From Geosiphon pyriformis uo1 (Eukaryota; Fungi; Glomeromycota), in assembly GCA_016748015.1 (NCBI GenBank), contig JAAOMT010000129.1:744001-808000 (forward strand): 64,000 bases of DNA, given 5' to 3'. Positions 6,001 to 39,500 of this stretch are shown piece by piece (the first letter of the stretch is position 1; the number at the start of each line of letters is the position of its first letter). The notes under the pieces were generated by a model. The model had not been told where the DNA came from. It saw only the letters and a program-made list of their open reading frames with translations, and did no database searches. The translations under genes were made by a program, and so were the position numbers.

Positions 6001-6570
6001 GGGGGAGGAAGAAAGAGTGATCCATCCAAAATATCATCATCATCATCATTTTCCATGCCAAAGTTAATAGTGCCAAGAGGCTTCTCAAGAGTATGCTTGG
6101 TAACAATTCTTTTGGGACTTTTAGGCATCATATTAGTATCAACACCACCAGATTCTTCTCTACTTTCTTGTCTAAAGCTAATTTTTTCAACCAGACATTC
6201 TTCCTCTATGTCAATGCTATCAAACTCAGTGGTATTACTAGTCTCTGAACTCCATGAACAACTATTCTAAACCTCAGAACCAACAACCTTACCACCAAAA
6301 CTATCTTCTAATGCATTATCTCTTCTCTTCTTCCTTGGAAGAACAGGCTTGAAGCTATCATTAGAACCAGAAACTTTAGCAGTCTTTTTTATAACTGCAA
6401 TACTACAGCCAACAGTGGCTTCGTAGTCAAGAATAAAGGGTTTGGATTTATCATATTGAATTGTGAAAATAACTTTTTTTTCAAAAAACTTTGACTCTTT
6501 TTTGGGAATTTTGGATGAAGAAGAGAAAAAAGTTTTATTTATTTTATAGAAAAATAACAATTTTATCAAT
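1..6570 (-). mobile_element. LINE (non-LTR retrotransposon) copy 1: ORF1, APE, RT, RNase H, CCHC; degenerate, 3' end beyond the window
   Basis: ORF1-like fragments at 4580-6420. APE motifs (CNVR, ILGGDFNED, KMIDYVFVS) at about 3900-4580. RT motifs (WKEAWILMIPKP, AGAFVDDTIW at about 2255-2290, HRYLGIFL). RNase H (VYMDGS, STLAELQAIALAL) at about 900-1200. Cys/His finger at about 400-460. Many stops. Confidence 0.92.
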
Positions 6571-8141
6571 AAAAACTAATATTAAACAATATTTTTTGAA
6601 AAAAACAACAATAAAAAATACAAAGATATTTTGTAAAAAAAACTTAATACAATTCTTGATTTATTAATAAAAACACAAATAATTGTTTTTGAAAAAATAA
6701 AATAAATTCAAAAAAAAATATACAAATCATTTTTTTAAATATTGATAACTTAGTTTTAAAATATTATTTAAACAAAAATAATATGTATAAAGATAAATTT
6801 TTTAGCCAATAGAAAAAACTTTTTATAATTAACAAAGTTTTAAACAATAGTTTTTATATTTTACAAAATTAATATAAAATAATTTTTAATAATTTAATCG
6901 GTATATAATATATAATTTAAAAATATTACAAATAATTTGATTAACTGTCTGTTATAATAATACTAATCCAAAAAATTAATAAAAATTATCAATAAATAAA
7001 TACACTATTTTTAAATAAAAATATTTTTAATTAATATAAACAATTATTTTCTGAATTAAAATAATTAAAAAACTTTTTATATTTTTTATAAATATTAAAT
7101 CAAAAATTATTTAAATACTACTTTAACTATTAAAAAACAAATTATTATAATTAATAACAGCAAAATATATACTATTATTAAATAAAAAAAACTATTATTA
7201 AAAGAAAAAAAACTGACAATAAAATAAATAAATACATAAATAATATATATAATTGTAATTATATTATTATTTTTTAATATATTTAAAAAAACAATTAAAA
7301 AAATTTTGCTCATAAATAAAAACTTGTCATATAAAAAACAATTAAAGTTTTATAATTAAGTTTTTTTAAATACTGTTATTAAAATTAAATATATATTTTA
7401 TTATTTTTAAGATTGTAAAATTTTTTATTATATTTGTTTTTGTTTTTATTTAATATTGTTTTTGTAATGTTTTATTAAAGTTTTTAGATAAAATTTTTAA
7501 AATTAAGTTAAAATCTAATAGTTTGTAATAATATATTATTGTTTATTTTAAATTATTTCTGGTTTTTAATGTTGTTTTAGCTTGTTAATATATTTTAGTT
7601 AAAAATAATATTCAAATTTTTTAAATAAAAAACTTGTAAATATTAATATTGTTATAAATATTAAAATTAAAATTAAAATTATTTGGTTATTAATTATAAA
7701 ATTGATTTTTTTGGTTTATTTAGATTTTTATTTAAATTTTTTGTTATGTTTAAAACTTTTATAAATTAATAAAATAATTTAATATTTTATGTTAAGATTA
7801 TTGTTTTTTAGAAATTATTTATGATTAATAATATATTTAAGTTTAATTAAAAATTTGGCAAAAACTTTTGCATTTTGCAAAAAAGATTAAAAGTTTAAAA
7901 TAAATTTAATAATTTATTTTTAAATAATAAAATAAATAAAAATTTTATTTTTTTATTAAATAATAATTTGTTAACTTGTTTATAATTTTTGTAAAAACTT
8001 TAAAACTAAGATATAAATAAAGATAAAAATAAAACTAAAATATAATTAATTAAATTTATAAAAAATAATGTAAAATTTTTTTATAAAGTATAATTTTAAA
8101 AAATTAATTATATATAAAAAACATATAAATTAGATAACTGA

Positions 8142-9449: not shown

Positions 9450-12400
9450 TTAAAATCCAAGTTTAGTTTTAAAAATTAATGACCTATTTAGATCAGCAAC
9501 TGACCACATCCAATTTTTCTCTGGAGTTGTCAGTTGCAACTGCGAATAAAAGTCCTTTAAAGTATTGACGAAATATTGATGCTTTATAGGCTTAGCTATG
9601 TGCACCCGCCAAAAGGCGTGTGCACATAGCCACTTGGCATGATTTTTGTGGATCCAAGTTATCGAAGACTTTTCTTCACACGGGATCACATTGTAGATGC
9701 CTTTAATAGCATCTATAATGATCCCCATTACCAAGTCGTCAGAAAATTTGAGCCCACGAGAGCTCAACTCCTCCACATATTCGTCAAATTTCATTGCCCC
9801 GAGCAAGAAATTTTGATAGAGATTGACTCGGGCTGTCGCCACGGAGTTCAACCTCGTATTTAGGAAAATTTCTGAGCAATTCTTTTTCATGAATCTAAAA
9901 AAATCAATACTTTTGGTAAATTAAAGAGAAAGATTTTGAAAATCAAAGGGAAAAACTTACTGCTTTAGTTTTTTTTGGAACTCTGTGCTTGGAGAAATAT
10001 TCGACATGATCGTCATTTGATCTCGAAGTGGAGTCGAAAGAGTTCGAGAGTAATCACACTTGACCTCCAAATCTTTGGTATGAATTAAGAGGCCGCACCA
10101 CGGAAATTCGGTTGGCGATAATTTGACCTCTTCATGGTCGAAGTTTGCCAATGTTTTTTCAGGGTTTATGAAGCATCCATACTCAGGATGACCTACATCA
10201 ATTCAAATCAAATCTTAAATGTTGGCATTCTGCCTCAAGTTATGATGGAGATATAAAACGACAAACCTTCATTCATGAGCCTCAAGAAACGTATCGCCTG
10301 GGCTTTATCCGTGCTGATATAAAGGAAATCGTCCACCCATCGAAGCAGAACCTATATCGAAGGGAAAATAAATCTCGTAATTATTTAGGAAAAAAATGAA
10401 TAAAGGATTAAAAATATTAACCCCATCTTTATCAAGAAAATTTAATTTGGTTTTTTCGAGGTCCTCAAAGAAAAAACTATTTAATGCAAAATGGAGGTCT
10501 TAAATTAACAACGCCGGAATGGAAATAAGAAAAGCAATCTATCAACAAGCACAAACCTGCATAATAAAGATGATATTATCGAGCCTTGAGGTATCCCGAC
10601 TTTCTGCCGGTAATATTTATCTCCAACCTAAGGGTTGTTAGTTAACAACATCTATGAGACGTTGACACATTCATTTTAATAAGATATCTGCCTTTATGGC
10701 CTTACCTTCAAAATATGCTGTTTGATGTGGTTCTCAAGGAATTCGAGAGCTTCTTTAGCTTCTCGGTAAGGGTAAGAAACCCCATCTACAAACAACACAT
10801 GGCTCAATGATTCTGCTAATCTTTCAGCGATAAGTGGAAAGCAAGGAAAATCCTCTATATATTTACGGAAATGAATTAAATATGTAATGATCGGGTTTTA
10901 AATTATGACGAATTTATGAAGGAACTTGTCTTTAAACCTGCTGGACATGCTTTTTTGTCATATGTCTTGATATATTCATTGCCTATTGCAGACATCGTGG
11001 TGAATTTGATCATCTTGTAGCGACGCTATTGTTGATAAGTCATATAGAAGTTATCGAAAAACATTGAAAAATATAATTAAGTTTTTAATTTTAAGATTTA
11101 TACTTACACTCTGGAATAAATTCGATATGATTTGCAATAATAGATTTTGGTCGATCGAATCAAAGCAGCATCTTACATCCACTTTGGCGAAATACAGCTT
11201 TCTCCTGTAAAAAAAATTGTTAGCTTTGGCTAGTATATTCAAATTTAAAAAACTTACTTTTCGGGCAATTTTTTTTTGAAATCAACCAATCGCTTATAGA
11301 CATCTTTTGTACTCATGACCGTCCCATTTGAAAATTCTACTCTTCGCTCCTAAGGGTATTTTAGAATGAGGAAGAATCATTGTAGTTACATGCTTTAAAT
11401 TTTCGAAAATGGCGACATACTTTTTCCAAAGCCAATATTTTAAAAGCATCCAGTAAGATTTTATTCATCGTAATTTGATTTTTTTTAACCGTCAAGTCAT
11501 CATTTATATGAGAGAACGATTTCTTTGCAATGGGCCTATACCCATTCTTTTTTGGAACAAGACGGATAGAAGAAAAACTGGCTTTCGTTGTGGGAGAGAG
11601 TGGTTGTATTTTTTCCTATTGCAATCAAATAAATACTTCTTTAGAATTTTAGATCAAATGAAGTGGGAAGGCAACTGATTTTGAAGGAAAATTATTTACA
11701 CATTCAAGTTTTTCGAAATTGTTATTTAGAAAATGGGCAATTTCAATATCGGATACTTTGTGCCAGATGTCCTGTCGAAAATAGTAAACACGATGACCAT
11801 CATTTTGAATGTCAGTGATGTAGAAGTTGGTCTGTGAAGAGTTAGCGGAAAATTTCGTGAATTAATCATTTCAAGAAACCAGTTAAATTAATGAATAATA
11901 TTAGAGATTCATCTAACCCGAAGTAGTGGAATTAAGAGTCCTTCGAAAGTCCATTTTAAGAATTCTGATATAATCGCTTTGCGCTTAACCATATCACGGA
12001 CCGGCAACCATTTAGATTGTTTCATCTAAATAATTAAAAGAAAAAATAATTAGGAGATTCTCGCTAAATATTAACTTTGGAAAAATGAGTAATACCTTGT
12101 AGCCCTGAAGAACTTCATGCATAGAAATCGATTCATATCTTCCAAGAGAGAGGAATTTATCTACAACTACAAGAAATTTTGGTTTGACAATCAATAATCA
12201 AGAAAAATTGAATCAACTGGGGAAATACTTGCTTTTGAATATAGCGATTTTGTTGTCTTTACGCCCCCAAAATTTCTCAGGTATCAAACGATCTAGTACG
12301 CCCTTGACAAATTTGGATACCTGATCCAAAGGACAAGAGATATCCTTTGGATTTCCAGTATTTATAGCATCATCCTTATTTGATACAGGAGAATGTCAGG

Positions 12401-15195
12401 TTAACTAGCTTTTTATGCTTAATATGATCTTTATAAACTCACATCGATAGGACACATTTGTCTCAAAAATTTTTGACATTGGAAATCAGCATGGCGATAA
12501 ATCATTTCTTCTATCAAAACTACTGCCGACGCCAGAAATGCGGGAAACGTTTCCTATGAAAATAATCGGGGTCATTTTATTGGATAAAATGAAAGGCAAA
12601 ACAAGACATCGATAATGAATCTGTTTTCCAACTTTTTCTTCACTCAATTTGACGTTGGTTAAGGAGTCTTGGATCTTTTTAACTTTATTGTAAACTTCAA
12701 TCTCGTTTACAGGATCTTTATATAATTGAAACTGTTTTGGAAAAATCACCGAGAGAATATCTTGAGCATTACATTCGTGTCGCTTAGCTTGGTTTAACAC
12801 ATCTGAATTATTATCATATTAAAGTTGCTTTAATTTATTCACATGTAACCTAGAACGAATTATAGAGTAAATTGCTTACGCTGAGGCGGTAAACCTAACC
12901 AAACAGTCTTTTTATCACCAGCAGAAATACAAATGGGCCCACGATAAAAAATATACACCCTTTTGAGCATTTCCGCAGTATCAGTTCTTTTACTGTAGAG
13001 ATAGAGGAATGTTGAATTTTATCCAAATCAATAAACAATAGGATTTCGTGAAAATTACCTCGAAAGAGTTTCCAATCGAGGAAGTTTATTGAAAGGCTCT
13101 TGAGACATCAGGTTCATTTCTGAAGTTGAAGATGAACCAACAGTGGTTTCGTTGTATGATTTCTTTGGCCTAATGTTATTGTTGTCGCTTGAGGTAAATG
13201 AATTAGTATTACTCTCCTTTCCAGATTCTCGTTGCCTACTATAATTGGAGAGGTTGTTGTTATAGGGGAAATTTTGGAACACCTTCAGTGGATTAATTGT
13301 TGTTTCACTTCAGACAGAGCAATTATTATAATCGATCATTTAAATTCAAAAAAAACCCCGATTACAGCTTTTCGATTAAAATTAAATTACCTTGATGTTT
13401 CTAATCGGAATTTTTTTTTTCTAGCAGGTTCTTGAGGGCTTAAGTTTATCATTGAAAGAGAGGATGAACAATCTTGACTCACTTGGTATGACCTCTTTTG
13501 AGAACTTTTTATGACTAGACTGTCACAGGGGACACCTGTATTAAATGTGATAATCAATGCGATGATCCAATGAATAGATCAATCGGTATTTGAAGATTTA
13601 CCAGTAGCTTGATAATAGCAATCATTCTGCAAGTGAATGAAGGTGGATGTCCATCTTAGCAGATGTGCCATTTCACATCCCCCAATCCTAATATCAACAA
13701 TAATTTAGTAGTTCTGCCATTAATATGGTTCCAAAAGACACTCATGAAATAAGGAAGACCCAAGATTTAATATATTGACTAACCGATTGAAAAGAATCTG
13801 CCAACAGGATGAGTTACGTATTTCGCTAAGAATACTATTAGGGTAATGATTGGTATATTCGGAATTTTTACTTCCCTAATAATTTATTTAGAGAAGAACA
13901 AAATAACATATATGATTGCTTTATATGTGAGTACTTTCAAATGACAAATTTTTTAAATAAAACCATACCTTCCAATAACCTCGCATGAGAACATTAGTTT
14001 TATCATAATCGCTGAACGTTTCGGGCTTATATTTTTCAACGAGCCATTTGATCACAGTGATCAAGACCTATTTAAAACGGAGTTGATGAAAATATTTAGG
14101 GTTAAAACGCAAAATAAAGTAAAATTTTATACCTCTTGCAAAGTCATCACATATTCCGGTTCAATTGATTGGATTAATGAATCAAAAAACCCATCATCTG
14201 TATCAGGCTGAACAAATGTAGTATTAATAAAAGTTTTATATTCTTCCGGATCGTCCTTCTGTAAAAATGCTTTTGGCCTATAGTTTCTTTTATTGATGAG
14301 ATAATCTTTCATCGACATAATTTTGGGATAGATAAGTTTCAATACTCGACCCAAAGGATGTTGTGAGTTATCGGTGATGAGGGTATTTTTTGAGGTCGGA
14401 GAAACTTTCTCAATTGACGAAGACATCAATTCGATGCTATCTATAGGATTGGTCAAAGGAGGGAAGGTCAATGGGGGGCCGAATCTTCTAGCATCGGAAA
14501 GTTCAAATGATCCCAATTTGATGTCAACAAATTGATAATAAGGGTTCATGAGCTCAGGGAGATATTGTGATCCCGGAATATCCCCGTGAGTATGTGTAAA
14601 GTCGATTATACGAAAGATTGGATCCCAACGTTGGGGACTAATAGGCACGTATGATAAGGAAAATCGCTTTAAAGCGATAAAGCTCCCCTCTTTCAATCCA
14701 TTACAGGGAGAATTACTGGAAGATAAGCAAAACATACAATCGTAAAAATGTTGGGTTTATTAAAAATGTGAAAGATGAACCCGTAAAGAGTTTTTTTCAA
14801 CTTTAAGTGAATTTAATTGTTTCTACAATTTTGAACTTTGAAAAATAAACGATATTTACCTGTCTAAACACACCTGTGGGAATACACAGGGAAGGTAGTA
14901 GCGCGAATCGTGAAGAAACGCGTTAATGGTGACTACCTTTAACCCTGAATCCGATAACGTTTCTCTGGTGGTTACCTTTTATTTTTGGAAACCCAGTTTA
15001 ATTTAAGTCTCAGTTGCAAGGACTTCAAAACAAAAAGCTAGCCAAATGTATTACTTTGAAAATTTGGGCTTGGAATTCAGAGTTGAATTCTGAAATGTTC
15101 CCGCGAGTTTCAAGTAATTTCTTAATCCACAATTTGTTAAGCAGTGGATAAGAAGCGGCCCACGCAGGCCAATTGTCTTTCTTACGAGGAAACAT
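9450..15195 (-). CDS. TERT: Telomerase reverse transcriptase with an N-terminal Est3/TPP1-like OB-fold extension; 25 exons, about 1288 aa
   Basis: Manual splice model, all phases consistent: 15195-15055, 14975-14860, 14715-14133, 14067-13969, 13875-13784, 13687-13602, 13535-13391, 13307-13059, 12992-12880, 12802-12633, 12553-12443, 12374-12233, 12166-12096, 12025-11918, 11831-11700, 11615-11421, 11349-11258, 11204-11108, 11025-10938, 10854-10706, 10627-10557, 10476-10422, 10351-10267, 10192-9961, 9894-9450. TEN/GQ motifs: [38 protein letters not shown]: FLRQMCP. QFP: [21 protein letters not shown]: [22 protein letters not shown]. Motifs 1/2: [14 protein letters not shown]: [15 protein letters not shown]': [19 protein letters not shown]: [10 protein letters not shown]: [15 protein letters not shown]: FPWCGLLI. 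Confidence 0.96.
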
Positions 15196-16045
15196 TTTTC
15201 AAAGGTAAAAATTTTTTTTTGACGCGTAGAAGGGCCAATCTACCATCATTACCCAGTGGTGATCGGCCACCTTGTAAAACCTACGCAAATTTTCGTTTAT
15301 AAGAGCCGTTTGGGGACTGCTGAAGATTACCTTCAATGCGCCGAAGCAGCGACAAAGTTAGATCAATTGCAAGATATCCGACTCTTTCGAAATATTATGA
15401 ATTTTAATATTTTGATTTAATTCATTTAAACAATCGCTATTGATTTTGTAAGGCAAAGATGTGTGGAAACATAATCCCACATCATCCGATCCAAAGAGAA
15501 GAAACATTGCTACTATTAGCCAGAATGAAATTATATCATCCCTCTTAGCAGTCTTGCAAGCCTAACTCTCTAATTTGATCTACCAGTTTATTGAATCTTC
15601 AGAGTATTTTCATTGAAAAGCTTCAAAAGCCAGAAAGAACAATTTGAGTGAAATTAGAAATAATAATATATTAAAAAAGCCAATCATTCAGTTACGTTCT
15701 TGAAAAATTTCCACAAGATATCCAAAGGAGTCCCTTCGTTTTTGATTGCAGCCAAGATTAAATGGTCCCATCGCGTCAAATCATTTAGCTATATTATCAA
15801 TGTCGGAATTTGGTAGCCGAAAAATTCCAATAATTCGTATTTCCCAAAACTTTGGAACTACTCTTTTATCATCCAGTTCAACTATAATTGAATAAGGAAC
15901 TAGTAATGAATGGAAATATCGGGATCAAGGGTGCTTTCACCTGACGAAATTAAGCTATTTACCCTTTTTGCTTGGAGAGAAGCAAATTATTTATTCTCAG
16001 CGTTTAAGATTATGCAAATATTTATTAGATGATGCAATGAATATA

Positions 16046-16091
16046 ATTGAGTAATTGAGTGATTGAGTGATTGAGTAATTGATTGAATGAG
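16046..16091. repeat. 8-bp tandem repeat ATTGAGT(A/G), 4-5 copies
   Basis: attgagta attgagtg attgagtg attgagta attgattg at the edge of the TERT upstream island. Confidence 0.75.
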
Positions 16092-16559
16092 CTCAAAAGA
16101 ATGTAGAAGATTACTTGCTAGAATGATCAGATAACTAATAATGTGGAAAAAAAATTTTATGAAATTTCTTATTTACTATTTTTAATCAAAAAACTTTGTA
16201 AATTTTAATATATTATCAATTAAGCAAATGTGTTTTCATTTGCAGTAAAAATTATTTTCTAAAAGATTAGTATTAATATAATTTTTAAACTTACTTTTAA
16301 GCTAACAAAACTTTTATATATTAGTAATCAAATTGACAATATTATTAATTTGTTTTTTTTTAAAAAAAACATAAATTTGCAATATTAAAACAGATTTTTT
16401 TTTATAATTAACAAAAAAAACCAGATCTATTAAAGCATTAATGAATTAAATAATAAATTCAATTAATTAAAACAGTTTAATTAACCAAAATTTTAAATAT
16501 TTTAATTTTAATTTATAAATTATATTAAAAAATATAACAAAAAAACCAAAATTATGTAA

Positions 16560-17160
16560 TAATTATTACTAATTTAAAATTCACAAATTTTAACTAATTT
16601 TAATAATTACTTAATTAATTCCAAATTTAAACAAAACATTTCTATTTTTTTCTTATATTATTAAATAATCTATAATCAAAATTTTTTATAAAAAAATTGA
16701 TTTTTATAATAAAATAATTATACATAATTTAAAAAGCTTATAAATAAAAATTTCTGTAAAAAAATTAACTTACTATAAAATAACTACACAAAATAATTTG
16801 CATAAAATTAAATATTTTATTATAAATTTAACAACACAAATAATTCAAAGTATAAAAAAATATTTTAAAAATAAATTAACTTATTAGAAATTTAATAATT
16901 TTTATTAACAATAAAATTAACAACAAAATAATATTAATAATATTAAAAAAAAACCAAAATTTTTAGTAATAATATTTTTATAAAACATTATTAAACAGCT
17001 TTTATAATTGTTAATATTTTATTAATAAAGAAATTACTAATTGTTTCAAATAATAAAAAAGATAAAAAAATTACAGTTTTTTATTTTTTATTCTGGTTAT
17101 AATTATAAAATTAAAAAAAAAAGTGTTTTATTAATTATCTTAAAATTTAAATACTTTTAA
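16560..17160 (+). repeat. Unclassified extremely AT-rich dispersed repeat (one copy of several)
   Basis: tatattattaaataatctataatcaaaatt...aaaagcttataaataa recurs at about 30200-30500 and, split by LINE copy 2, at about 19585-19640 plus 27400-27620. An adjacent block recurs at about 19280-19480, 29640-29900 and 36190-36360. Confidence 0.7.
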
Positions 17161-19639
17161 TAATAAAAGTTTTTTTATATAAAACATATTTTATGATTAT
17201 TTAAAAATTAATTGGCAAAAATAATTTTTAATTTTACAAAAATTAAAGTAAATTTTAAAAACTTACTTTAAAATATGTAAATTTATTAATCTATATTTAA
17301 AATTTTGCCAAAAATTTTTGTAGTATTTAAAAAAATCAATACCAAAACATATATTTTTAAATTTTATTTTTTGCAAATACTTTTAAATATAAAATTAAAT
17401 TAAATTTTGTAATTAGCAATAAATTATAAAATTATTAAAACCAAATATAAAAACTGTTTATTAGAAATATTTTTTTTTAAAATTATATTAAAAAAATTTA
17501 TATATTAAAATAAGTTTTTTTATATTTAATTTAATCAAATTTTTGGTTACTAAAAATATATTCAAGTAGAAACAAAATTTATTAAGCTTTTTTTTATTAA
17601 ATATTTAACAAATACAGTTCAGCAAAAATTTAGTATATATAAACAGATTAAAAGTTTATAATTAAATATTGTTTATGTATTTTCTATATATAATCAGTTA
17701 TTTAAATTAATTAAAACAATACTATTTACTTATAATAACATTAATACTATTAAACAAACCAAAAAAAAATACATACTAATCATATAAATTTCAATTAATA
17801 ATAATAATATTATCAATATTTAATACTTAAATTACACTATTTAATAAAAATTCAGCCAATTTTTGTAAATTATAAGAAATTACTAAATTATCATAAACCA
17901 AATCACTTTTTTTTATTGTTATTTTGTATTTGGATCTATATAATTAAATCTTATTTCTATAACTTTTTATTAAATACTAAATTAAAAAAACAACAAATTT
18001 TCTAACCAAATTAGTATTTTTAAAGCTTTTATATACTAATTATTAAAAATCATACTTTAATACAAAGCTATATATCAAGCACCAGAAATCTTAAAATATA
18101 TTATTAAAAAAAACAATATAAAAATATTTATATAAAAAACTCATAAATCCAAAATTTTATTCAATAATTTAAAATAAATTTTTATATTAAAAATACATAT
18201 AAAAATATAATCCAAAATCTTAATTTTACTACAATAAAAACAAATTACTTCTAAATAATATTTATTATATAGTTATTTATAAATAATAATTAAAAACTTT
18301 TTATAAACAACTTTTATTATATAAATATGAAAACCAGTAATATACTTATTAATAAAATCTGAATATATATTTAAATTTGGCTGTTAAATTATTAAAATAC
18401 ATTATTAATTTAATATCTTTAATTATAATCTAAAAAATAATATTAGTTTTAAGACTTAATTTTTATTTAGTATTTTTAATTGATTTATAAATTTGATAAA
18501 CAAAATAACAAATATTGTTTAATATAGTCTTGTTTTTAATCTTAAATTTTATAATTAAAATAATCATTGTTTTATTTATTATTATCTAAATAAAAAATCA
18601 ATTAATTACAAAAAAAAATATAATTAATATATATATTAATACAAAATAATATATAATAATTAATAAAAATATTAAATAATAAATAATAATATAAAATAAT
18701 TATTAACAAAATAATATAAAAAATAGTATAAAATAACAAAATTTTAAAAATTATTTTATAAAATTAAAATATTTATATATATAAATAATTTTAATTTAAA
18801 AAATATATTTAGCTTTAAATTTTAATTTTAATTTTAAATATATTATATAAAACAATAATTTTTTTGATTAATAATAATAAAAATTTTGTTATTTTTGTTA
18901 TTAAAACTAATTAATAATTAAAAACAGTTATTATTATATTAAAAACTTGAAATAAATAATAATATATTATTAAATATTAACAAATTTTAACATAACTTAA
19001 AAAATTTTACTAAAAACATTAAAAGCAATTTTAATATTAACAATAATAATATTTTTAAATATATTTATAAAGCAAATAATAATAATAAAAATTTAACAAT
19101 TTTAAAAATAAAAAAATTAATAGAATTAATAAACTTGATTTAAAAGATAATATTTATTCATTTATTAAAATAAAAAAAATAATATTTAATAAAATTTAAA
19201 AAATAAATTTTATACAAAACAGTTTATATTGTTTTTAAACATAAATTTTATATTTATTTTCAAATAAAAATTAAATTATTAATTAGCATATAATTATTCT
19301 TATAATTTTTATTATTAATTAATATATATTATTATTTATTATTTAGCTAAATTATCAAATATAATTTGTATAATATATAAATAAAACTAAAATATAATAA
19401 TTAAATTATATAATATTTTAAACTATATAATATTTAAAAATTTGCTAAAATAATTTATAATTTGCCAAATATATATTTAATTTATTGAAATAAAAAAATA
19501 TTAAAATTTAAAATAGTATTTTTATAAATTATATAAAAAAAAATATTTTAAAACATTAATTAATTAATTATTTTAATTTTTTTTTTATATTATTAAATAG
19601 TTTACAATTAAAATTTTCTGTAAAAAAGTTAACTTTTAT

Positions 19640-22600
19640 AATAAAGATGAATAAAAACTTCTTTTTTTCTTATCTTCAAAAAACTCTAAAAAGCAATTTA
19701 TTTTGAAAAAGTTTTTATTTTTTTTTGCTATTTTTTGAAAAAATTTTTCAATCAAATAATTCTTTTGTGGTAAACCTGGCTGCTGCTTCAGGTAGTACTA
19801 TGTCTATGAAAAAAATGCCCAAAGGGGTTCTTCATAGCTTTGTTGAGAGTTTTTTTTCTTAGAAAAAGAGAGTTTCTGTTGGTAATGTCAAGTATTCTAG
19901 AGATAAAAAAGATATCTCTTTGGTCAAACTTAATCCTGGTAATAGTGTATATTTAGATATAAACAGTGTATCTGGTAACAGTAAAAATGATAATTTTTTT
20001 TTTGGTGTTGGCAATAATTCTCTTTTTGATTCGGCAGCAAATATCCCTAAGGCTAAAAAGATAATTACTGATCTGATTTGTGGCTCCCCTTTTGGCTTAA
20101 TTGATTATGGCATGGACAAAGACAATGGGCCCCTCTTTCCTTCTCTTAAAATTTTTCTTGATAAAAAGTGGGTTGATCCAAAAATTGTCAAATCTCAAGT
20201 TGAAGTATTTATTAGAAAGTTTTTTGTTCTTGACATCAATTTTAGTGCTATAGAAGGAAAATCAGTGACAGCAAAGACTCAATTCATCAGAAAATTTTTT
20301 TCATTAGTCAATGGTTTTGGAGGGACTACTACCCTTTCAAAATTTAAAAGGATTATCCACTCTATATTTACATCTAAGGAGAATTTGAAAAAGGCCATGT
20401 TATTGGCTAAAAATAAGGGAATCATCATAAACAATGATCTTAAAAAACAAGAAATCCATTTGAATTGGGTTGTGATTGTTAAAAAAATTTTCATAGATAT
20501 GTCTAAGAAAATGATCATTGCAGCTTTATCTGAATTTGGTCAAGTAGTGTCAATCCAATTACAGCTCATTGGGCTGTGACAAAAGGCTGTGGTTGAATTT
20601 GCCGAATCTAGCCAGGCTGAGCAGTTGGCTTTAAGATGGTCCTTTTTAATTGGGAAAGATTCAGTTTATGTGGCTATGGCCATAAAAAATTAGAATATTT
20701 GGGTATTTAGAGATTGGTTTAGAGTGCTTCTGTTTACTTTGCCTATGGGTACAACAGCACATAATTTTGAGACTCTCTTGAAAGGAGCTAATGAAAAAAC
20801 TTGCATTATAAATCAATCTTTAGAAACTGGCAATAGGATTTGCTGTGCTGTAGTTGGCTTCAACTCTGATGAGAAATTGGAATCTGCTTTTCATACAAAG
20901 CCGATTTTTGGTAGTGTAAAGCTTTCTTGGACTAGGTTAGACTTGGTTTATTGTGAGAAATGTGGGTATTTTGAACATTCAATTCTGAAATGTAATGTGT
21001 TAAAAGTATTTGCTCTGCTGTTTTCTAAAAAACCATATAAGAGAGTTGTTCCTCAAGAGATTCATTTTCAGTTAGCCAAACTGTACAGGAAAAAGAATGT
21101 TCCAATTTCTTAGTCTGCTTCTTTTGGTGGCAGATCATGAGCCTAAGTAATTACATTAAATAACTCCTCTGGTGATCATCATTTCAGTACTGGTTCTGAT
21201 TCCTTTTTCTTCAGTTCTTTAGGTTTAAGTAGTAGTTCTCCTTTTGTTCCAATCTGTAATGTGTCTTTAAGTGATTATTTGGCTTCTTTGGAATGCTCCC
21301 TAGAGCTTTTGACAGATCAGATTTCTGGTATTACATGCAAACTCAATGACATGAAATTGGTATCTTTAATCTCCATTCTCTTTCCTCTTGTCTTGGCTGT
21401 TTTGAAAGCCACCAATTTGGATTTAGGTTCCAATATGATTTTAGATGGCCCTAAAATAGTGCTTTTGCCTCCTTCTTTTGTTTTTCCTGATGTTTCGACT
21501 TTGAGTTTAAGTTGTTTAAAAGTTTTGACCACCAAGATGGGTTGTTTGGAATTGAAGTTAGCAGTTCTGGAGGCATTTATTGGTTCAGTTTTAGCAAAGT
21601 TAGAGCAAGTTTGTGCTGTTTCAATTCTTTCTGCAAATATTTTTTCTCAATGAGCAAGCTGGTATAAAAAATAGTCACATGCAATGTTCAGAGTATTAAT
21701 GTTCCTGCTAAGCAAAAGGACATTATTTGTTGACATAAAGATTCAGAAAATATGGTTTCAATCATTACAGAAACAAAGTTAAGATTTACTATTAGGCCAT
21801 AGATAATGAATAAGTTTGATGGTATTCATATTTTTACATCTGGTTTGAATAAGGGTTTTTTTGGAGCTAAAATAACTATTATTATGAACAATTTTTTGAC
21901 ATGGCACATGTCTAAGGTAGAAGAAATTCCTGATTGGGTTATTTCAATGAAACTTTTATTCAAAGGGAAACAGTCAGTTATGATATTAGATTTATATGCT
22001 GGTGTGTCTGCTAAAGTGAGATTTAGTCAGACATTAGATGTTAATTCATCTATTGTTAAGGTAGTCAACACTAATACATTTGTGGTTTTAGGTGGAAATT
22101 TCAATGAGGATAGTGCTAAAAAAAGTACAAGTTTCAAGTTTTGTTTGAATCTGAGATTGGTTAACTCATTTCATAAACATTCTTTGGTCAAAGTTCTTAC
22201 TTGGAGCAATTTCAGGAGCATAAAAAAGGTCATCAATTTTATTTTTGTAAACCAAGATATGGCTTCTGCTATTGCTGACCATAGAGTTTTTTCTGTGTCT
22301 AAATTTTTTGATACCAATTACAAAACTGTTTCAATTGCCATTGGTTTGGGTGGTCTGCTGAATTTTCACCTTAGTGTTGAACAGAGGCAGGCAAATAGAG
22401 ATAGATGGAAGTTCAGAATTAAGGATGCCAGTACAGACAAATAGTCACAGTTCAGGACTCTGTCTTTGGGCAAATTTTTACAGTTGGGGTCTGGCTTTAG
22501 TAATATGAAAAGTTATAATAACTTAGATGCTATGTAGAAGTTACTTAGAGAGATAGTAGTTAGTTCTGTCAACAATATGTTTTCTAGATTGTAATTTAGT

Positions 22601-27846: not shown

Positions 27847-29612
27847 TAGAATTTTAATTAAACTAAATTAAATTAAACTTTGAATGTTATTCAAGTTCAG
27901 TTTAAATTACAAATTGAACTTGAACCAAATCAATTTTTTAAAGTAGATTCAGTTTGAGTTTAACATTAATTTTTTTTGACAAGTCTAAATTCAGTTTAAG
28001 TTTGGTTCAAAGTTTATAAACTTGTTCAAGTTTGATAGCATTAAAAAAATATATCTTGTACTACTTGTTTATTAATTATTATTATTTTTAATTATTATAA
28101 TCAGTTAAAGAGATATATAAAACTATGTATATATAACAACTCTACTTTTCAACTTATTAAAATAAATTTATTGTTAGCATTATTCAATGTTTTCAAAGAT
28201 TTAAAATTCGAAATAACAGAATTTAATAATCCAAATAGTCCAAATATTAATATATTTGGTAAACATAATTTTTAGAATAAAGTATAGAACTATTTTAATA
28301 AGTTTGAATAAATAAATAAAAAAAAACAACTAAATATACAATTTCAAAATGTATGCATAAACCATTTTTTTGTGAAACTATAGACACTACTAAACTCTTA
28401 TAATATCATTTAAAAATTTTTTATTAGACAATATATGTTATAATAAAAAAATATTATAAGAAAAGACAAAATATCCAGAAAAATTATAAATTAATTAAAA
28501 AAATGTTTTAATGAATAAGATTACTATTTTTTTATAATTTTTGGCCAATCTAACTAGAAAACTGCTCTAGTTTTTTATAATAACTGCTATTAATATTGAT
28601 GAATCTGATAAAGTATTATAATCTCAATTGTATTTATTTAATTATTTATTTAACATATTTAATATTAAATTTATTACTTATTATAATAGTTAAGACAGCA
28701 AGAAAAAAGTTGGTTAAATATTACTCTAAAATAAATACAATTATAATGCTCTGTACTACATTAAATCTAAGGAAAAAATTTTATTATTTTATAAAGAGAG
28801 AATTTTTGGATAATAATATTAATAAAATAAAAAAATTATAAGTTATTAATTTATTCAAATAGTTTTATTTTTCAACTCTTACACAATAAATAAATTTTTA
28901 AAATGTATACTCTTTTTAAAACAGAGTATATACTGGACATTATACCAACATCAAATGACAGTTTTTTGTTAAATAGCAATTTTAATAATACTATAATATT
29001 AGTCATACAATCTATATTAAAGACAAACTTTAATAATAATAAAGAAAAACTTAACAAAATTGATTGTTATATTTCTGAAAAGATGTCAATAAAAAAATGA
29101 ATATAATGACATAGTAAAAGATATATTACAAAAAATATTTATTTAAATTAACTTTTATTAATAATTCGATATTTAAGCATATTAAACACAATTTTTTTGT
29201 TTTATATATATGGCTTGTAATTATTTAACAATTTAAGAATTATTTGTTGCTTCTGAACACGTTTTTTTTACAGGTAAAAATATAATTACAGATATGAGAT
29301 CTTGCTTAGTGCTTAAAACTATTAGAACAATATAATGTTTTTAATTATAAATACAAAAACCATTGAAAAAATAATTAAATAATAATATAATATAATATAA
29401 TGTTTTTAATAGTTAAACTTAAACATATTTATGAATTTTAAATCAAACTTAAACCAGACTTGTTATATATGTTCAGATTTAGTTCAATTTTAGTAATTTT
29501 AAATTTGGTTTAAGTTTAAGTTTAAAATTTTCCCAAATTTTCTGTTTAAGTTTAGTTCAGTTTAGTGTTTTGATTAAACTTAAATCAAACCAAACTAAAT
29601 ATTAGAATTCTA
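27847..29612 (+). mobile_element. Decayed hAT DNA transposon (internally deleted)
   Basis: About 12-bp imperfect TIRs TAGAATT(T/C)TAAT. 8-bp TSD ATTATCAG/ATTACCAG. Subterminal TTCAAGTT/AACTTGAAC arrays at both ends. hATC dimerisation-domain relic MACNYLTI*ELFVASEHVFFTGKNIITDMRSCLVLKTIRTI at about 29210-29335. Confidence 0.85.
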
Positions 29613-31738
29613 ATTACCAGCCAAAATTTGAAATGTCAATTAACATAAAATTATTCTTATAATTTTTATTATTAATTAACATATATTATTATTTTAATTT
29701 ATCATTATTATTTTATTAAATTATTTGAATTATTACTTAATTAATAATTTAATTTATATAAAACACAAATATAACCAAATTATAATAATTATATCATGTA
29801 ACATACTAAATTATATAATATTTAAAATTCACTAAAATATTTAGTAATTTGATAAAATATTTAATAATTTATTAAAAATAATCCATAATTTACAACAAAT
29901 TATATAAAAGAAAAACTTTTTTTTAAAAAAATATATCTTAGTTTAAAATTATTATTTTTAAATATCTTTCTTAAAATTAATCTTATTTTAGAATTAATAT
30001 TGTTCTTATAAATTAATTTAAAATAAAATTATTTTAAAACCCAAAATTTTTAAAGTATTAAATACTTAAAATTAACTCATTTAAAACTAATAATTAAAAT
30101 TAATTAACTACTAATTTTAATAACTATTAGTAACTTTTAGACTTGAATTTAAAATAATTTTTTTAACATATTTTTTTTTTAGTTAATTTTTTTTTTTTTT
30201 TTATATTATTAAGTAATCTATAATCAAAATTTTTATAGAAAAGTTAATTTTTATAGCAAAATAATTATACATATTTTAAAAAGCTTATAAATAAGATTTT
30301 TATAACAAAATAATTATATAAATAATTGGCACAAAATTGGCTATTCTATTATAAGTCCAATAATATATGTAGTTTAAAGTATAAAAAGTTATTTTGAAAA
30401 AAAAATTAACTTAATAAAAGTTTATTACCTTTTATTAACAGCAGAATTAATAATAAAATAGTATTAACAATATTAATAAAAGAATAAAAAATTTTTTGTA
30501 ATAATATATACAAAAATATAATTTGTTTTAATTTTAAAATTGGTAAAAATTAACCAAAAACTAATATATTAAATAATATAATAATTAATTCAAATTAAGA
30601 TCAATTAATATGTTTTTATTATTATTATTTAAAATAAAAAATTTATTTTTATATATAATTATAATAAAATTAAACACAAAATTAATAAAAAATAAAAAAA
30701 ATAAAAAAAATTGGCTTTAAAACAACAAAATTAATACCAGAAAAAAAACTTTTTAGCATTTTAAAAAAGTTGTTATTAATTATAATAAAAATAAAAAAAT
30801 TTGTTTTTAGGTTATTTTAACTTTTTTGGTTATTTAAGTAATAATAAGAAAAAAACAAAAAAAACAATTTAATTATTAAATATTTTAAAACTTTTAGTCA
30901 AAACAAAAATTATATTAAAAATATTTTAAGTAGATTTTTTTAATTAAAAAATAAAAAAAACTGATTAACTACTATTTTATTTAAGAAAAATACTTTTAAT
31001 ATTTGTTATTTTAGAAAATAAAAAAATTACAACTTTTTTACTCTTTATTTTAATTGTAATTATAAAAATATAAAAGAAAAAAAGTTATTTTTGGTTATTT
31101 TTGGCTATTTTTTCTTGGTTTAAATATTAATTAACTTAAATAATTAGTTTTATATAAAAAATGCATAATTTTTAATTTTAAATAAACAAATACAAAATAA
31201 AATATATATTTAATCAACTTTTTTTGTGAAAATTAATATAGAAAAGTTTTGACTGTAATACAATTTTTAATGTTTTTGAAAAAAATTCAAAATAATTGTA
31301 TAATTTGAAATTACAACTTATTAAAATGTCACTTTATTTATTAAATATAAAACCATTTAATGGTAATAACCTTGATATTTCTTTTTTTCTAGGCAAAGTA
31401 TCTGGCCCTCAGAAATTACAATTAAAAGTTGGTTGGGAAAAGAGCTAAAATAGAAATTCAAACTGAAAAGAAAATCATGTACTACGTAAAATGAGGTGAA
31501 AAAGGCACGTTACCCTGGTCGTTAAGCCACCGCAACACTTTGTTGAAACACGCGATAAATTGGTCCGCCCATAATCCTTCTACGTATTAATACCTTAGAA
31601 TCTACTTATTAGGGATTCACACTGATTTTTAAATTCCAAAATTGAAATAACAAAAATAATAATTGGCTCTTTCACTTTAAAGGGTCTTATATATCGAGAT
31701 TATGAATGTATTTTTTCATTGGGCGGCTTTCCAATATT

Positions 31739-33889
31739 CTATCCCAAGTAAGTTGAAGCACTCACATTACCACCATGACCAGTCCAATTGACATGAACGT
31801 CGGCATCCTTTGGATGCTTCTCATCAGTATATTCATCAAGATATCTAAAGGTGTGAGCCCTGAAATCAACAATGTAAACAGAGATTGAGTTTTGATTCAC
31901 AATTTTAAATCAAATATAAAAAAATCGAGGTTTACCCAAAGTAGTCTCTTTGTGCTTGCAACAGATTAGCTGGTAACCTTGCACTCCTGTAACCATCGTA
32001 AAAAGTCAATGCAGTCGCGAAAGCTGGTGTGGGGATGCCTATTAATAATGCTTGAGCGACGACTTGACGCCAAGACTCTTGGGCCTTCACAATGGCGTTT
32101 TTGAAAAATGGATCGAAAAGGAGATTCTCAAGGTGTGGGTTCTTAGTGTACGCGTTTTTAATATCTCCGAGGAAAGCACTATTTAAAATTAAATTTTGAG
32201 TTTTTCAAGTTATTGAATGTTCATCAATCAAAAATTTTAAGTGATATAACCTGCGAATAATACAGCCACCACGCCACATCAAAGCAATACCAGCAGTGTT
32301 CAAATTCCAATTGTAAGTTTTGGCCGCTTCGCGCATTAACATAAATCCTTGTGCATATGAAACTAATTTCGACGCGTAAAGAGCTTGACCTATTTTATCA
32401 ATGAAGGGTTTCTTATCCCCATGATATTTAGTGTTTGCAGGGCCAACAAGAATTTCGCTTGCCCTAACGCGTTCATCTTTAAGAGAGGAAAGGGTACGAG
32501 AATATACAGCTTCACCAATCAACGTAACTGGGATACCAAGATCAAGTGAGGATATGGCGGTCCATTTTCCTGTGCCTTTCTTTAATTATGTTGAAAGAAC
32601 AATTATTTAGCAGAGCAATACTGAGATTATGTTGAAAAGTTGCAAATGATCATACTTACTTGACCAGCAGTATCTCTGATTTTTTCTACTAAAGGTATAC
32701 CATCTTCATCTTTGAATTTTAAAATATCTTTTGTAATTTCAATCAAGAAAGAATCCAATTCTCCTTTATTCCATTCATCAAAAATATCTCCCATCTCGTC
32801 ATGTGGGAGACCAAGACCATCTTTCAGGAGATGATAGGCTTCAGTGATAAGCTGCATATCCCCGTATTCAATACCATTGTGAACCATTTTAACATAATGA
32901 CCAGCCCCAGTTTCTCCAACCCAATCACAGCATGGTTCATCACCGACTTTGGCTGCTATGCTTTGAAAAATTGGTTTAATATGGGGCCTAATTTGGATAA
33001 AAATATTATTTTCATAAAATTGAAGAAAAATAAGTGGATAGATTATTTGAATTAAACGAATAATTATTGTACCAAGCTGCTGGAGATCCTCCTGGCATAA
33101 GAGAAGGACCATAACGGGCACCGTCTTCACCACCAGATACACCACAACCAATAAACAAGAAGCCTTTTTCTTCCAAATATTTGGTTCTTCGAATAGTATC
33201 AGGGAAGTGGGAATTACCCCCATCAATTATGATGTCACCAGGTTCAAGATATTTAATTAATTCTTCAATAAAATGATCGACAGCCTCGCCAGCTTTGACC
33301 AATAACATTACTTTCCGCGGACGTTTTAACTTGCTGACGAGATCTTGGATTGAATAGGCGCCGATTATATTGGTACCTAAATTGGATTAGAGTAAATCAA
33401 ATCTATGGCTGATTTCAAATGGGAATTCATTCTTCAACATCAAATACAGACCTTTTGCTTCGTTCTGCAAAAAGGCTTCAACTTTACTGACCGTTCGATT
33501 GTAGGCAACAGCTTTGAATCCATGATCATTAACATTAAGAATAAGATTTTGGCCCTTTTTATCAAAGTATAATGCTTTCGTTCAGAAATTTATGAATAAA
33601 AAAGGTGTTCATTAGATAATTATCCAAAATACCATGACAGCCAGGCCAATAAGACCAAAGTCGGCACTAATAAGCAAAAATAAAAGAAATCAATTTCAAG
33701 CAGGAAATCATTTTGATAATGTAAATTCAATCTCTTAATTTTTGTTTTAATAGATTTAAATGTGATAACCAAGATATTATTTATATTTAGAAAAGAAATT
33801 GGTAATGTATAAGTGATTTTCACGTAGAAAATTTTATACGTGTTTTTCCACTGAGGCAGGCCCACACATACTTACAGTTCAGCAGCCAT
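31739..33889 (-). CDS. GND1: 6-phosphogluconate dehydrogenase, decarboxylating; 8 exons
   Basis: Exons 33889-33876, 33666-33633, 33554-33452, 33376-33073, 32987-32660, 32579-32251, 32178-31936, 31859-31739 with GT-AG introns. Motifs [105 protein letters not shown]. Confidence 0.97.
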
Positions 33890-35690: not shown

Positions 35691-36521
35691 AAAATTAAAA
35701 TTTGTTATAAATTAATAAATTTAATGTTTAAAATAAGGTATACACAATTTATTTAAATCATAAATTATTAAATATAAATAAAATATAAATGGCTTTAATT
35801 AAATTTTTATAATACATAATATTTTAATTTCCAACAAATGTAATATATATTTGTTTTCTTTTTTTTCAATTAATAAAAATTTAATTGATGAATTTGTAAT
35901 TTGAGTATTATAAATTATTATTCTTATTAAGAATTTTATAAAAAAAATATTTTGCAATAATAAAATATTTTAGTATATATATATTTATTACTTTTATTGT
36001 AATTTAATCACCAATTATTATTGCATAACACAATTATTATATGTTAAATTTTTTTATTTTTTATTTTTAACAATTATTATTTATTATAATACATCAAAAA
36101 ATACTTTAATATAAATATAATTTATGTCTTAATTATATATAATCAGCTATTTAATTAAAATTACATTACAGATTATTTAAAAACAATACATAATTAAATT
36201 AATTTATATAATACATAAATATAATTAAATATAATAAAATAAATTATATAATACTTTAAATTATATAATATTTAAAAACTTATTAAAATATTTAACGAAT
36301 TATTAAAATATTTAATAGTTTATTAAAATAACATGTAATTTACCAAAATATATATTTAAATCTTAAAAAATTTATAAAATATTAGCAAAAAAAAATTATT
36401 AAAAGTTAAAAAAAAAATTTTAAATTATTAATCAATTAATTTATTTTTAAAAAAACCAATTTTTTATAATTAATAGTTTAATACTAGTTTTTTTATTTAA
36501 ATATTTAGCAGTAATTTTTAA

Positions 36522-39500
36522 TATTATTATATAAAGAAATAAAAATTATAATAGATAAAAAAATAGCTAATTAAAAAGAAGCATAGTAAATAGAAAAATT
36601 CCAAGATTTCAAAATTTTAGAATTTTTCTTAAGAAATTACAAAATTTCAGAATTCCAGAATTCTAGAATTCTTTTTAAAAAAATTGAAAATTTTCAAAAA
36701 ATCTTGTATAACACAAATTATATATATATAATAAGAGTGTTAAAAACAGAAAAAAATTCAATATAGAGTTTAAAACAGTTAAAGATAAGTAAGTATTCAA
36801 TACTCTTTTCTTTAAAAAATAGTTTTTTATAACTTGAAGTAAAATTATACTGATATCAATAAAATTATCTATTATTATCTAATTTATGTTATTATTAATT
36901 AATTAAAAAATATTAATTATTTTTACACTATTAACAATTTATGTTGATAAAATCCAATATTTAACTACACTAAACTAATTATGATTATTAACAGAATATT
37001 AATTTTTTATTTTATTTTATTTGTTTTTTTTTGTTGTTTACTAATTAATTAAAAGATTAAGTATTGAATAATTGATGTCAAGGATAGCCTGGTAAAAAAT
37101 CCATAAAACAAAAATAAAAAAACTTAAGAATAACTTACCAGAAGAACATAATTGTTAAAATTAACTGGCCATTATACTGAAAAAAAAATTTACAGAAGAA
37201 ACTCTTAATTAAATTTCTGTTTATTATACAAAAAACTCAACCAAAATTTTTAGAAATTATTATTATCAATAACTATTAAGCATTAAATTACAGATTTGTT
37301 ATTTGTTTTAACTTCCTAAATAATCATTTATAATATTTGGTGCTCTTTGTAAAATATAATCTAACAGAAAACCAGCACCAATATCAACTATTCAGAAAAA
37401 TAGCAAACCAAAAAATCATAAAAAAAAATCATTTAAGATTTGCAAAATTTTTATTTTAATATTATCAAATTTACTTTAAACTAATAAATAATCATTGATT
37501 AGCAGAATTAGCTTTCAATTTTTATGTAAACAAAAAAATTATATAATATTTAAGAGACCAAGAAAATCTAGAAACCACTATTAAGAATTTATATAATAAA
37601 CTATTATAATACACCAATTTTATATAAAATTATAGTTTGTTTGAATCTTACTTATTAAGTGAATAAAAAAAAAATTATAGTTTTGTCTCAATAATTACAG
37701 AAATAAATCATAAGATTAAAAATTATACCAAACAGAAATTTCTCATCATCTTTACTAACAAAAAAAAAGAAAAACTATAAACTTTAACAGAAATTCCAAA
37801 AAAAATACAACTGTCTATTTAGAAAAAATCTAAAGTTATTTTATATATTAATCTATTATATCATTATATGTTTAAAAGTACTATTCAAATAATATTAACA
37901 ACTACACCTATAGTAAAAATACTATTATCTAGAGTATCATTTTAAAATAATCAAAAAAAAGCTAAATTATTAAGAACCTATAGCAATTTCTTTAAAGAAT
38001 TTAAATTATGATTAATAATATTATCATAATTTTAATTATTACTATTTTAACCAAATTTTGAATCTACCAGTAATTAAAAAAACACTGATTCAGAAAAAAA
38101 AAAACAGTAATCAACAAAATAATAATTAAAACCCAATTCTAAATAATTCAGAAATCATAACTTTAATTGTTTAAATTCAGCCAAATCTAAACAATTTAAA
38201 TCTTGCTCTTATTTTTTCACAAAACTTATCTTTAGTTATTCTAATTAATCAACTACCAATAACACCAATTACTGCTTATTAACAATAACCACAATTATAA
38301 ATATTTGCATTAATAGTTTATCTATCAATTACCAAATTAGAAAAATTTACTGACAAAAAAAACAATATCCAAATATGGTTGAATAATATAATAAAAGTCA
38401 TTACAGCTAATGGATAAGATAATGTTAAAGCTTTTTAAGCAATTTTTTACTTTTAACAAAACACTACTAACTTGTGATATCAAAATTTTGTAAACAAACT
38501 CCAAGATTTTAACATATTTAAAACTGTATTTTTACAGTATTTTAATAATAATAATAGTATTAATTGTCTGTTAATTAGTTTTACTACTATTAAGCAAGAT
38601 AATACTGAAGCAATTATTACTTACTTAAGATATTTTCATAAAAAGCTATATTAAATCAAAACAATTAACACCAATTACTTCACAGTACTGCAAATTCAGT
38701 ATTTTTCTACAATAAATATACCTAATATATCCAAATACTTTCTAAGATACAGTTATACACATCAGAGATTTCGAATTGGCAGAACTTAAAGCCAATTACA
38801 TCTAAACTATCAACTTAGTAATAAATAGATTATTTAAACTAAATTCTAAGTTAAAACAATTTAGTAATTTAATCAACCAAAAATTAGAAGGATACTTAAC
38901 TAACAATCTAATAATTTATCAATTTTCACAATATTATAATAATTAAAAAAACTTTAATTACTTTCAAAATTAATCATATCTATCCTTATTATTGGCAAAT
39001 TAATTATGACAACAAAAAATATGTAATTGCTATTATTGTAATAAACAAAACTATCTAAAAGCAAATTGCCATTTCAGATCCAATAATTTATGATCAAAAA
39101 ATTAATATAGAAATTCTAATTACAGATTTTAAATCCTAAGTTATATTAACAACTCAACTGAACAATATCAATATTAGTTTTAGTACATACCAATAATATA
39201 ACAACTCACATATTTATCTTTAATTTATCAGATTTCAGCACTAGTAATATATAAATTACAGTTACAAGTTATCTATTAACCTTAATAAATCCAAGGACCA
39301 CTCCAGATTTCAACTTAAGTACTTATTAAAAACCAAAAACTAAGAATTAATTACACTTATTAAATTTAAAGATTAATAATAGTAATGTACTAACTAATTT
39401 TCAGTTTATTAAATCAGCTATCAGGATTATGCCAACAGAATTCAAGAAGTAAGTACACTCAAAACCTAAATTTTCAAAACTATTTAAGTTTTCTGGTAAC

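Follow-up and report, generated by a model that had tools for sequence, protein, structure and literature searches.

The window analysed here, a stretch of 64,000 nucleotides from the genome of the early-diverging fungus Geosiphon pyriformis, carries a multi-exon gene on the minus strand that runs from position 15195 to position 9450 and that, by the protein families and motifs it matches, is identified as TERT, the catalytic subunit of telomerase. Pfam comparison of the exon translations finds Telomerase_RBD (PF12009) on three collinear exons, which align with profile positions 1-30, 67-99 and 99-131 (E values of 3.7e-5, 2.4e-4 and 3.1e-7, respectively), as well as TERT_C (PF21399, E 2.5e-12). 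The reverse transcriptase (RT) motifs 1/2, A, B' and C are legible in the exon translations as P-K-K-x-G-Y-R-P-I, K-V-D-V-x-x-C-F-D-S-I, G-I-P-Q-G-S and W-V-D-D-F. The TEN part found no match in Pfam, among PDB sequences or among ESM Atlas features. We take it to begin at H205 and to include GQ-like strings, a putative assignment made by position ahead of the Ser/Asn-rich linker and the RBD and by likeness to the TEN and GQ region of human TERT. With the TEN start at H205, the extension ahead of this domain amounts to about 204 residues, made up of an OB core (approximately residues 9-134) and a linker (residues 135-204). The parts of the gene and of its leader are as follows, where X1 denotes the one public sequencing run that contains the stretch.

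15199..15249, minus strand: 16-codon upstream ORF within the 5' leader, sharing the frame of the main ORF
15201-15199, minus strand: TGA that ends the upstream ORF, 3 nt ahead of the main ATG at 15195
15055..15195, minus strand: exon 1, 47 codons, phase 0, residues 1-47 (translation, X1 joint and deposited protein)
14976..15054, minus strand: intron 1, 79 nt, GT..AG, skipped in X1 contigs
14860..14975, minus strand: exon 2, 116 nt, phase 2, residues 48-86 with the final codon split (translation and X1 joint)
14716..14859, minus strand: intron 2, 144 nt, GT..AG, skipped in X1 contigs
14133..14715, minus strand: exon 3 as a whole, a single stop-free exon
14571..14715, minus strand: OB part of exon 3, residues 86-134, which are predicted to form beta4 and beta5 (translation and AlphaFold2 model)
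14361..14570, minus strand: linker in exon 3, residues 135-204, Pro/Ser-rich, pLDDT about 31-36 (translation and AlphaFold2 model)
14133..14360, minus strand: putative TEN start in exon 3, from H205 (position and motifs)
14068..14132, minus strand: intron 3, 65 nt, GT..AG, skipped in X1 contigs
9450..14067, minus strand: rest of the TERT gene, with the remaining TEN part and its GQ-type motif, a Ser/Asn-rich linker, the RBD, the RT motifs and the C-terminal extension
11652-11861, minus strand: T motif (RBD)
9453-9920, minus strand: C-terminal extension of TERT

Exon joins and transcript evidence

The three exons that encode the extension (15195-15055, 14975-14860 and 14715-14133 on the minus strand) join in frame. 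Exon 1 contributes the start codon, a predicted N-terminal helix with the string W-I-K-K-L-L and the beginning of the OB domain, and exon 2 the central strands with the H-D-S-R motif. In an earlier sequence-only reading of this DNA the same translation and the same phases 0 and 2 had been given, and the GT..AG introns on which they depend are verified here. That reading had further placed the C-terminal half of the OB domain, the linker and the TEN start together in a single stop-free exon and an internal ATG at 14426, and both can be seen in exon 3, where this ATG encodes M183 inside the linker. The linker itself had been put at about 45 residues and has to be lengthened to about 70, since the OB core ends near G134 and TEN is taken to begin at H205 (position 14360). 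The 182 codons upstream of M183 are free of stops, which from the local base composition would be expected by chance with a probability of 7e-6.

The contigs of X1 carry an automatic label as possibly DNA. They skip at least 12 introns of the TERT gene at exact GT..AG borders, and comparison of the genome with itself revealed no intronless TERT copy, for which reasons we read the run as cDNA. Three of its joints (14975/15055, 14715/14860 and 14067/14133) coincide with the splice sites that had been proposed from the letters, and eight more GT..AG joints lie within 9450..14067. The contig that bears the joint of exons 1 and 2 agrees letter for letter with the window across 15051-15369, and the leader is thus unspliced over 174 nt or more. 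In a transcript with this unspliced leader the frame does not open further upstream, since the TGA at 15201-15199 stands in frame before the ATG at 15195. X1 contigs are also gapless and in frame across 14228-14609 and 14580-14715, and the frame thus stays open from the OB part across the linker to TEN; as assembled contigs they neither show that exon 1 and the RT exons belong to one molecule nor exclude a further start at M183.

For this locus the annotators deposited KAG9304024.1 (P0004), a hypothetical protein of 364 amino acids, which shares exons 1-5 and ends after running on into an intron. Extension and TEN are thus connected in the public annotation already, but TERT is truncated there and left unnamed. 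The proposed in-frame join of the extension to TERT is in this way backed by the genomic sequence, by the spliced contigs and by the deposited protein.

One X1 contig contains a non-canonical skip of 73 nt at 14273-14345. The candidate explanation that exons 1 and 2 form a separate upstream gene was also considered and is ruled out, as the C-terminal half of the OB domain and the TEN start lie in one stop-free exon and the joints are observed.

The N-terminal domain

When residues 1-150 are compared with all of Pfam by hmmscan, the sole family matched is TPP1/ACD (PF10341). The match is collinear, with residues 24-112 aligned to positions 24-111 of the 158 profile positions (E 6.3e-4), and scores 20.0 bits, which does not reach the curated gathering cut-off of 26.5 bits. 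A TPP1/Est3 match in Pfam had been anticipated from the sequence, and the family and the order of the alignment bear this out, but the score does not. Exon 2 by itself also matches the profile (E 0.015, 15.5 bits), as do P0004 (17.4 bits) and a paralogue described below, P0001 (E 0.018, 15.3 bits). No match of residues 1-150 to the Rep-A_N (PF04057), POT1, tRNA_anti-codon or SSB families was returned by hmmscan, even at E values up to 10. The neighbours of the domain according to a protein language model are OB-fold families only; Rep-A_N forms the top cluster (score 0.95, 13 of the 30 matches), TEBP_beta/TPP1 follows with 0.94 and 0.93, and HROB and HIN stand lower down.

The AlphaFold2 model of the domain, made from a two-row alignment with the paralogue as the only second sequence, has a pLDDT of 43. 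At this low confidence it predicts a helix (residues 11-31), strands (34-85), a short helix and further strands (98-127), and the order of helix, beta1-3, short helix and beta4-5 fits the OB fold of the TPP1/Est3 type, in which a barrel of five strands is preceded by a helix and has another between strands 3 and 4. Fold searches by Foldseek against the PDB, by VIA-align in its wide form and by the Atlas shape search gave no significant match (best Foldseek E 0.029, best Z 5.4, TM <0.5), which we ascribe to the poor quality of the model. The sub-threshold lists consist mostly of OB folds, among them RPA70N, SSB, PriB, cold-shock domains, CST and Pot1, and a chain of a Tetrahymena telomerase entry (7lma_E) is a weak match at E 0.14. 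The OB fold that had been expected to emerge from structure prediction and fold search is thus reflected in the composition of these lists but not in a significant match, and with a model of this quality OB subfamilies are not separable by structure. Searches of PDB sequences with the OB part, as a single sequence and as a two-row profile, found no TPP1, Est3, p50 or other telomere protein. The deposited protein contains the strings W23-I-K-K-L-L and H69-D-S-R, which are putative counterparts of the W-I-[KR]-x-L-[IL] and central D-[SG] signatures of TPP1/Est3, the central one resembling RPA70N as well.

An OB fold is likely because the Pfam match, the language-model neighbours, the secondary structure and the weak fold matches all point to it. 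The sequence-only reading had gone further and named an Est3/TPP1 OB fold. The OB part of that proposal stands, but the assignment to TPP1/Est3 is weakened by a Pfam score of 20.0 against the 26.5 bits of the cut-off and by Rep-A_N being level with TPP1, or above it, among the language-model neighbours. Membership in the TPP1/Est3 family would be our best single guess for this domain, at even chances or marginally better.

Copies in the genome, selection and distribution

The window holds the sole full-length TERT copy in the genome. A second copy on contig C718 is 93% identical to it and has lost about 2 kb of the RT core by deletion; it also contains four frameshifting indels after the OB part. 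The OB frame of this copy is intact and encodes P0001 (KAG9304541.1, 160 amino acids). Since eight of eight variant letters in one spliced X1 contig match C718, this copy too is transcribed and spliced. Between the two copies 4.3-6.9% of sites differ in the OB exons (4.8% in the OB part of exon 3), as compared to 8.3-13.9% in the introns. The OB coding sequences are separated by 13 non-synonymous and 10 synonymous changes (pN/pS 0.35), a ratio which indicates that the OB region is under purifying selection.

Older fragments are found on contigs C779 (83-88% identity) and C608 (71-87%) and on at least 10 further contigs. In a tblastn search of the genome with the OB domain, all matches adjoin TERT copies, including the old ones of 71-86% identity. 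Because every OB copy adjoins a TERT copy, the linkage of OB and TERT predates those duplications.

No homologue outside Geosiphon was found by phmmer, word-index searches or a metagenome scan. When exon 3 was compared by phmmer with 1.8 billion representative proteins, the paralogue P0001 and two proteins of low complexity were the only matches. The word-index searches (residues 1-160, P0004 and the TERT_C exon) gave P0001 or nothing, under a length filter that leaves out full-length TERTs and so makes them blind to such proteins, and the metagenome scan with P0004 yielded nothing. Six-frame genome searches for PF10341, PF04057 and PF02765 came back empty, by a method that fails to pick up even RPA1, which is universal, or the OB exon of the window itself.

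Discussion

The extension described here is transcribed, splicing joins it in frame to TERT, and its evolution is that of a coding sequence; we are confident that it is a real, OB-like N-terminal extension of this enzyme. About evenly balanced is the fuller proposition that the sole full-length TERT of G. pyriformis possesses an N-terminal OB domain that most likely belongs, as a distant relative, to the TPP1/Est3/TEBP-beta group and is connected by a flexible linker to TEN. That we are dealing with a natural fusion of a TPP1/Est3-type OB domain with TERT, which predates several duplications and is accompanied by a transcribed OB-only paralogue next to a dead TERT, we would put a little short of even.

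Among known systems, the architecture is Est3-like and not shelterin-like. The C-terminal POT1- and TIN2/Poz1-binding regions are absent, as the OB domain is followed by the linker of about 70 residues and then by TEN. Est3 of budding yeast is likewise a small single OB-fold protein (about 180 amino acids as compared to about 135-160 here) that has no POT1- or TIN2-binding tail, and a W-I-K-x-L-I/L string near the N-terminus and D-S in the central strand may be common to both. In Est3 an N-terminal segment and a patch on the OB core bind the TEN domain of TERT (PMC7619062). Est3 differs, however, in being a separate polypeptide held by Est1 and Pop1, whereas the domain considered here is covalently joined to TERT through the linker. 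TPP1/ACD of mammals and Tpz1 of fission yeast are brought close by the Pfam result, since their family is the only one matched, in collinear order but below the gathering cut-off; yet these are shelterin proteins, which work in trans and bring telomerase to telomeres. In Tetrahymena, p50 is a constitutive, TPP1-like holoenzyme subunit, an OB-fold activator that sits permanently on the TEN/TRAP surface of TERT. It too is a separate protein, unlike the present domain, and it also bridges the CST-like and Teb1 subcomplexes. The covalent connection of an OB-fold telomere or telomerase factor with the catalytic subunit has its parallel in engineered tethers (Cdc13-Est2, TPP1- or POT1-TERT and Tpz1-Trt1), which are laboratory constructs that bypass recruitment, whereas here the connection occurs in a natural gene. 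Finally, RPA70N (Rep-A_N, PF04057) is an N-terminal protein-docking OB on a flexible linker, is the top language-model neighbour and recurs among the weak fold matches, but it belongs to RPA1 and not to telomerase and has no Pfam match here at E values up to 10.

The last of these likenesses underlies the main rival explanation, which we consider rather unlikely, namely that the extension is an OB domain of another kind, either an RPA70N-like docking module or a Teb1/POT1-like binder of single-stranded DNA, and would provide TERT with a built-in DNA anchor or recruitment handle instead of an activator that binds TEN. It would account for the leading place of Rep-A_N among the language-model neighbours and for the RPA70N, SSB, PriB and CST chains that populate the weak fold lists, and the pattern of the central strand, which we take to be common to RPA70N and TPP1, may be counted in its favour too. 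Against this explanation, hmmscan gives TPP1 at E 6.3e-4 and, even at E values up to 10, none of the Rep-A_N, POT1, tRNA_anti-codon and SSB families. In addition, the tblastn search of the genome meets TERT copies only, and the domain is therefore not a recent copy of RPA1 or of another OB gene. A second rival, and a distinctly improbable one in our view, assumes two products. Catalytic TERT would be made mostly from an internal start, either at M183 or through a promoter that lies within intron 2 or exon 3, and exons 1-3 would serve mainly, with the same low probability, as a separate small OB protein or as a regulatory leader. M183 does precede the TEN start by 22 residues, as would be normal for the first residue of a TERT, and the C718 paralogue is an example of a free OB protein of 160 amino acids from a transcribed and spliced gene; the upstream ORF of 16 codons just ahead of the main ATG suggests translational control, and the 73-nt skip in the X1 contig would be in keeping with two products as well. 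Against this, the window copy is without a stop between OB and TEN, the two meet within one exon, and the contigs cross the region gapless and in frame. Nor do molecule starts or ends pile up in exon 3, although contigs are incapable of showing such a pile-up.

Least probable of all is, in our estimate, that the extension is a lineage-specific and largely unstructured or non-OB add-on that has no telomerase-specific role, and that the Pfam and language-model signals arose by chance. The similarity scores, which all lie under the curated or recommended thresholds, and the low-confidence model are compatible with such an add-on. Yet three independent kinds of weak evidence agree on the fold class, the OB region is under purifying selection, and the Pfam alignment stays collinear over 89 residues.

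If, then, the extension is a TPP1/Est3-type domain, we infer that it would dock in cis on TEN and give rise to a self-activating enzyme. The tethered domain may occupy the TEN (and IFD-TRAP) surface in the manner in which Est3, TPP1 and Tetrahymena p50 do so in trans, and the approximately 70 flexible residues ahead of TEN would allow it to hold this docking site permanently and thus to act as a built-in activator. Once docked, it would be a permanent subunit that keeps the active enzyme stable and promotes repeat addition, and telomerase would have to reach chromosome ends by way of another surface, contact or partner. Tetrahymena p50 is an OB-fold protein that binds TERT at TEN. Est3 and TPP1 have been reported to bind the TEN domain of TERT through an N-terminal segment and a patch on the OB core and to stimulate activity (PMC7619062), and the OB domain of TPP1 to bind TEN and IFD-TRAP and to raise processivity (PMC8653790). 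Since all three are OB proteins that bind TEN, a fusion of OB and TEN is plausible as a Rosetta-stone event.

Our search of the literature found no natural TPP1/Est3-TERT fusion, only engineered tethers and OB subunits acting in trans. Lineages differ in whether the OB-fold activator (TPP1, Est3, p50) recruits telomerase transiently or belongs to it as a stable subunit. A helper that elsewhere is supplied as a separate subunit may in G. pyriformis be part of the enzyme itself. Should this be true, the gene would provide Rosetta-stone evidence, from an early-diverging fungus, for an ancient partnership of OB and TEN in fungi, and would represent a minimal self-contained system in which activation can be separated from recruitment, as well as a single-chain construct for structural work. 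The fused form in the window TERT and the free form encoded by the C718 paralogue would be two versions of the same activator in one organism, and would suggest that free Est3-like proteins can arise by duplication and subsequent decay of the TERT part. The present analysis also corrects the public annotation, in which the TERT gene is split and its N-terminal piece is labelled a hypothetical protein.

TERT copies in the Geosiphon pyriformis genome

The window copy is the only full-length TERT in the G. pyriformis assembly (G000), through which many fragmentary copies with 63-95% identity are dispersed.

G000:C718:2137619-2138667, TERT paralogue (locus L002), encoding protein P0001 (KAG9304541.1)
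G000 contigs C779, C608, C343, C344, C392, C412, C563, C472, C385, C697, C562, C512, C727 and C704, fragmentary TERT copies (loci L003-L017)

The paralogue on contig C718 is 93% identical to the window TERT and retains an unbroken frame of 160 codons for the OB-like domain. The TERT part 3' of this frame carries four frameshifting indels and has a deletion of some 2 kb in its RT core. In the public sequencing run X1, a contig bearing all eight of eight C718-specific letters has the equivalent of intron 2 spliced out, and P0001, a free, Est3-sized OB protein, may therefore be expressed.

Another X1 contig, spanning window positions 14228-14609, has C718-type letters at 14258-14297 and at 14539, and the sequence between them is of the window type and is free of the C718 indels. 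This mixture suggests that there is a third allele or that the window and C718 copies have undergone gene conversion with each other. Also within exon 3, 73 nt (14273-14345) are skipped in one X1 contig. The ends of the skip are non-canonical (GT..AA, minus strand) and the reading frame would shift at the start of the TEN domain; the skip could represent a minor isoform, an effect of paralogue alignment or an assembly artefact.

Leader, annotation and surroundings of the window gene

15199-15249, minus strand, uORF of 16 codons, sharing the TERT frame and lying within the transcribed leader
13688-13783, minus strand, intron entered by the deposited model KAG9304024.1

The uORF stops 3 nt 5' of the main TERT ATG and may subject TERT to translational control by reinitiation. 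The public annotation divides the gene, since KAG9304024.1 passes the exon 5 donor and ends inside the intron; this N-terminal TERT piece is labelled a hypothetical protein.

Across the window, gene islands (G+C 0.30-0.39) are interleaved with intergenic blocks of exceptionally low G+C (0.11-0.19).

6001-8000, 16001-20000, 28001-32000, 36001-38000 and 56001-60000, low-G+C intergenic blocks
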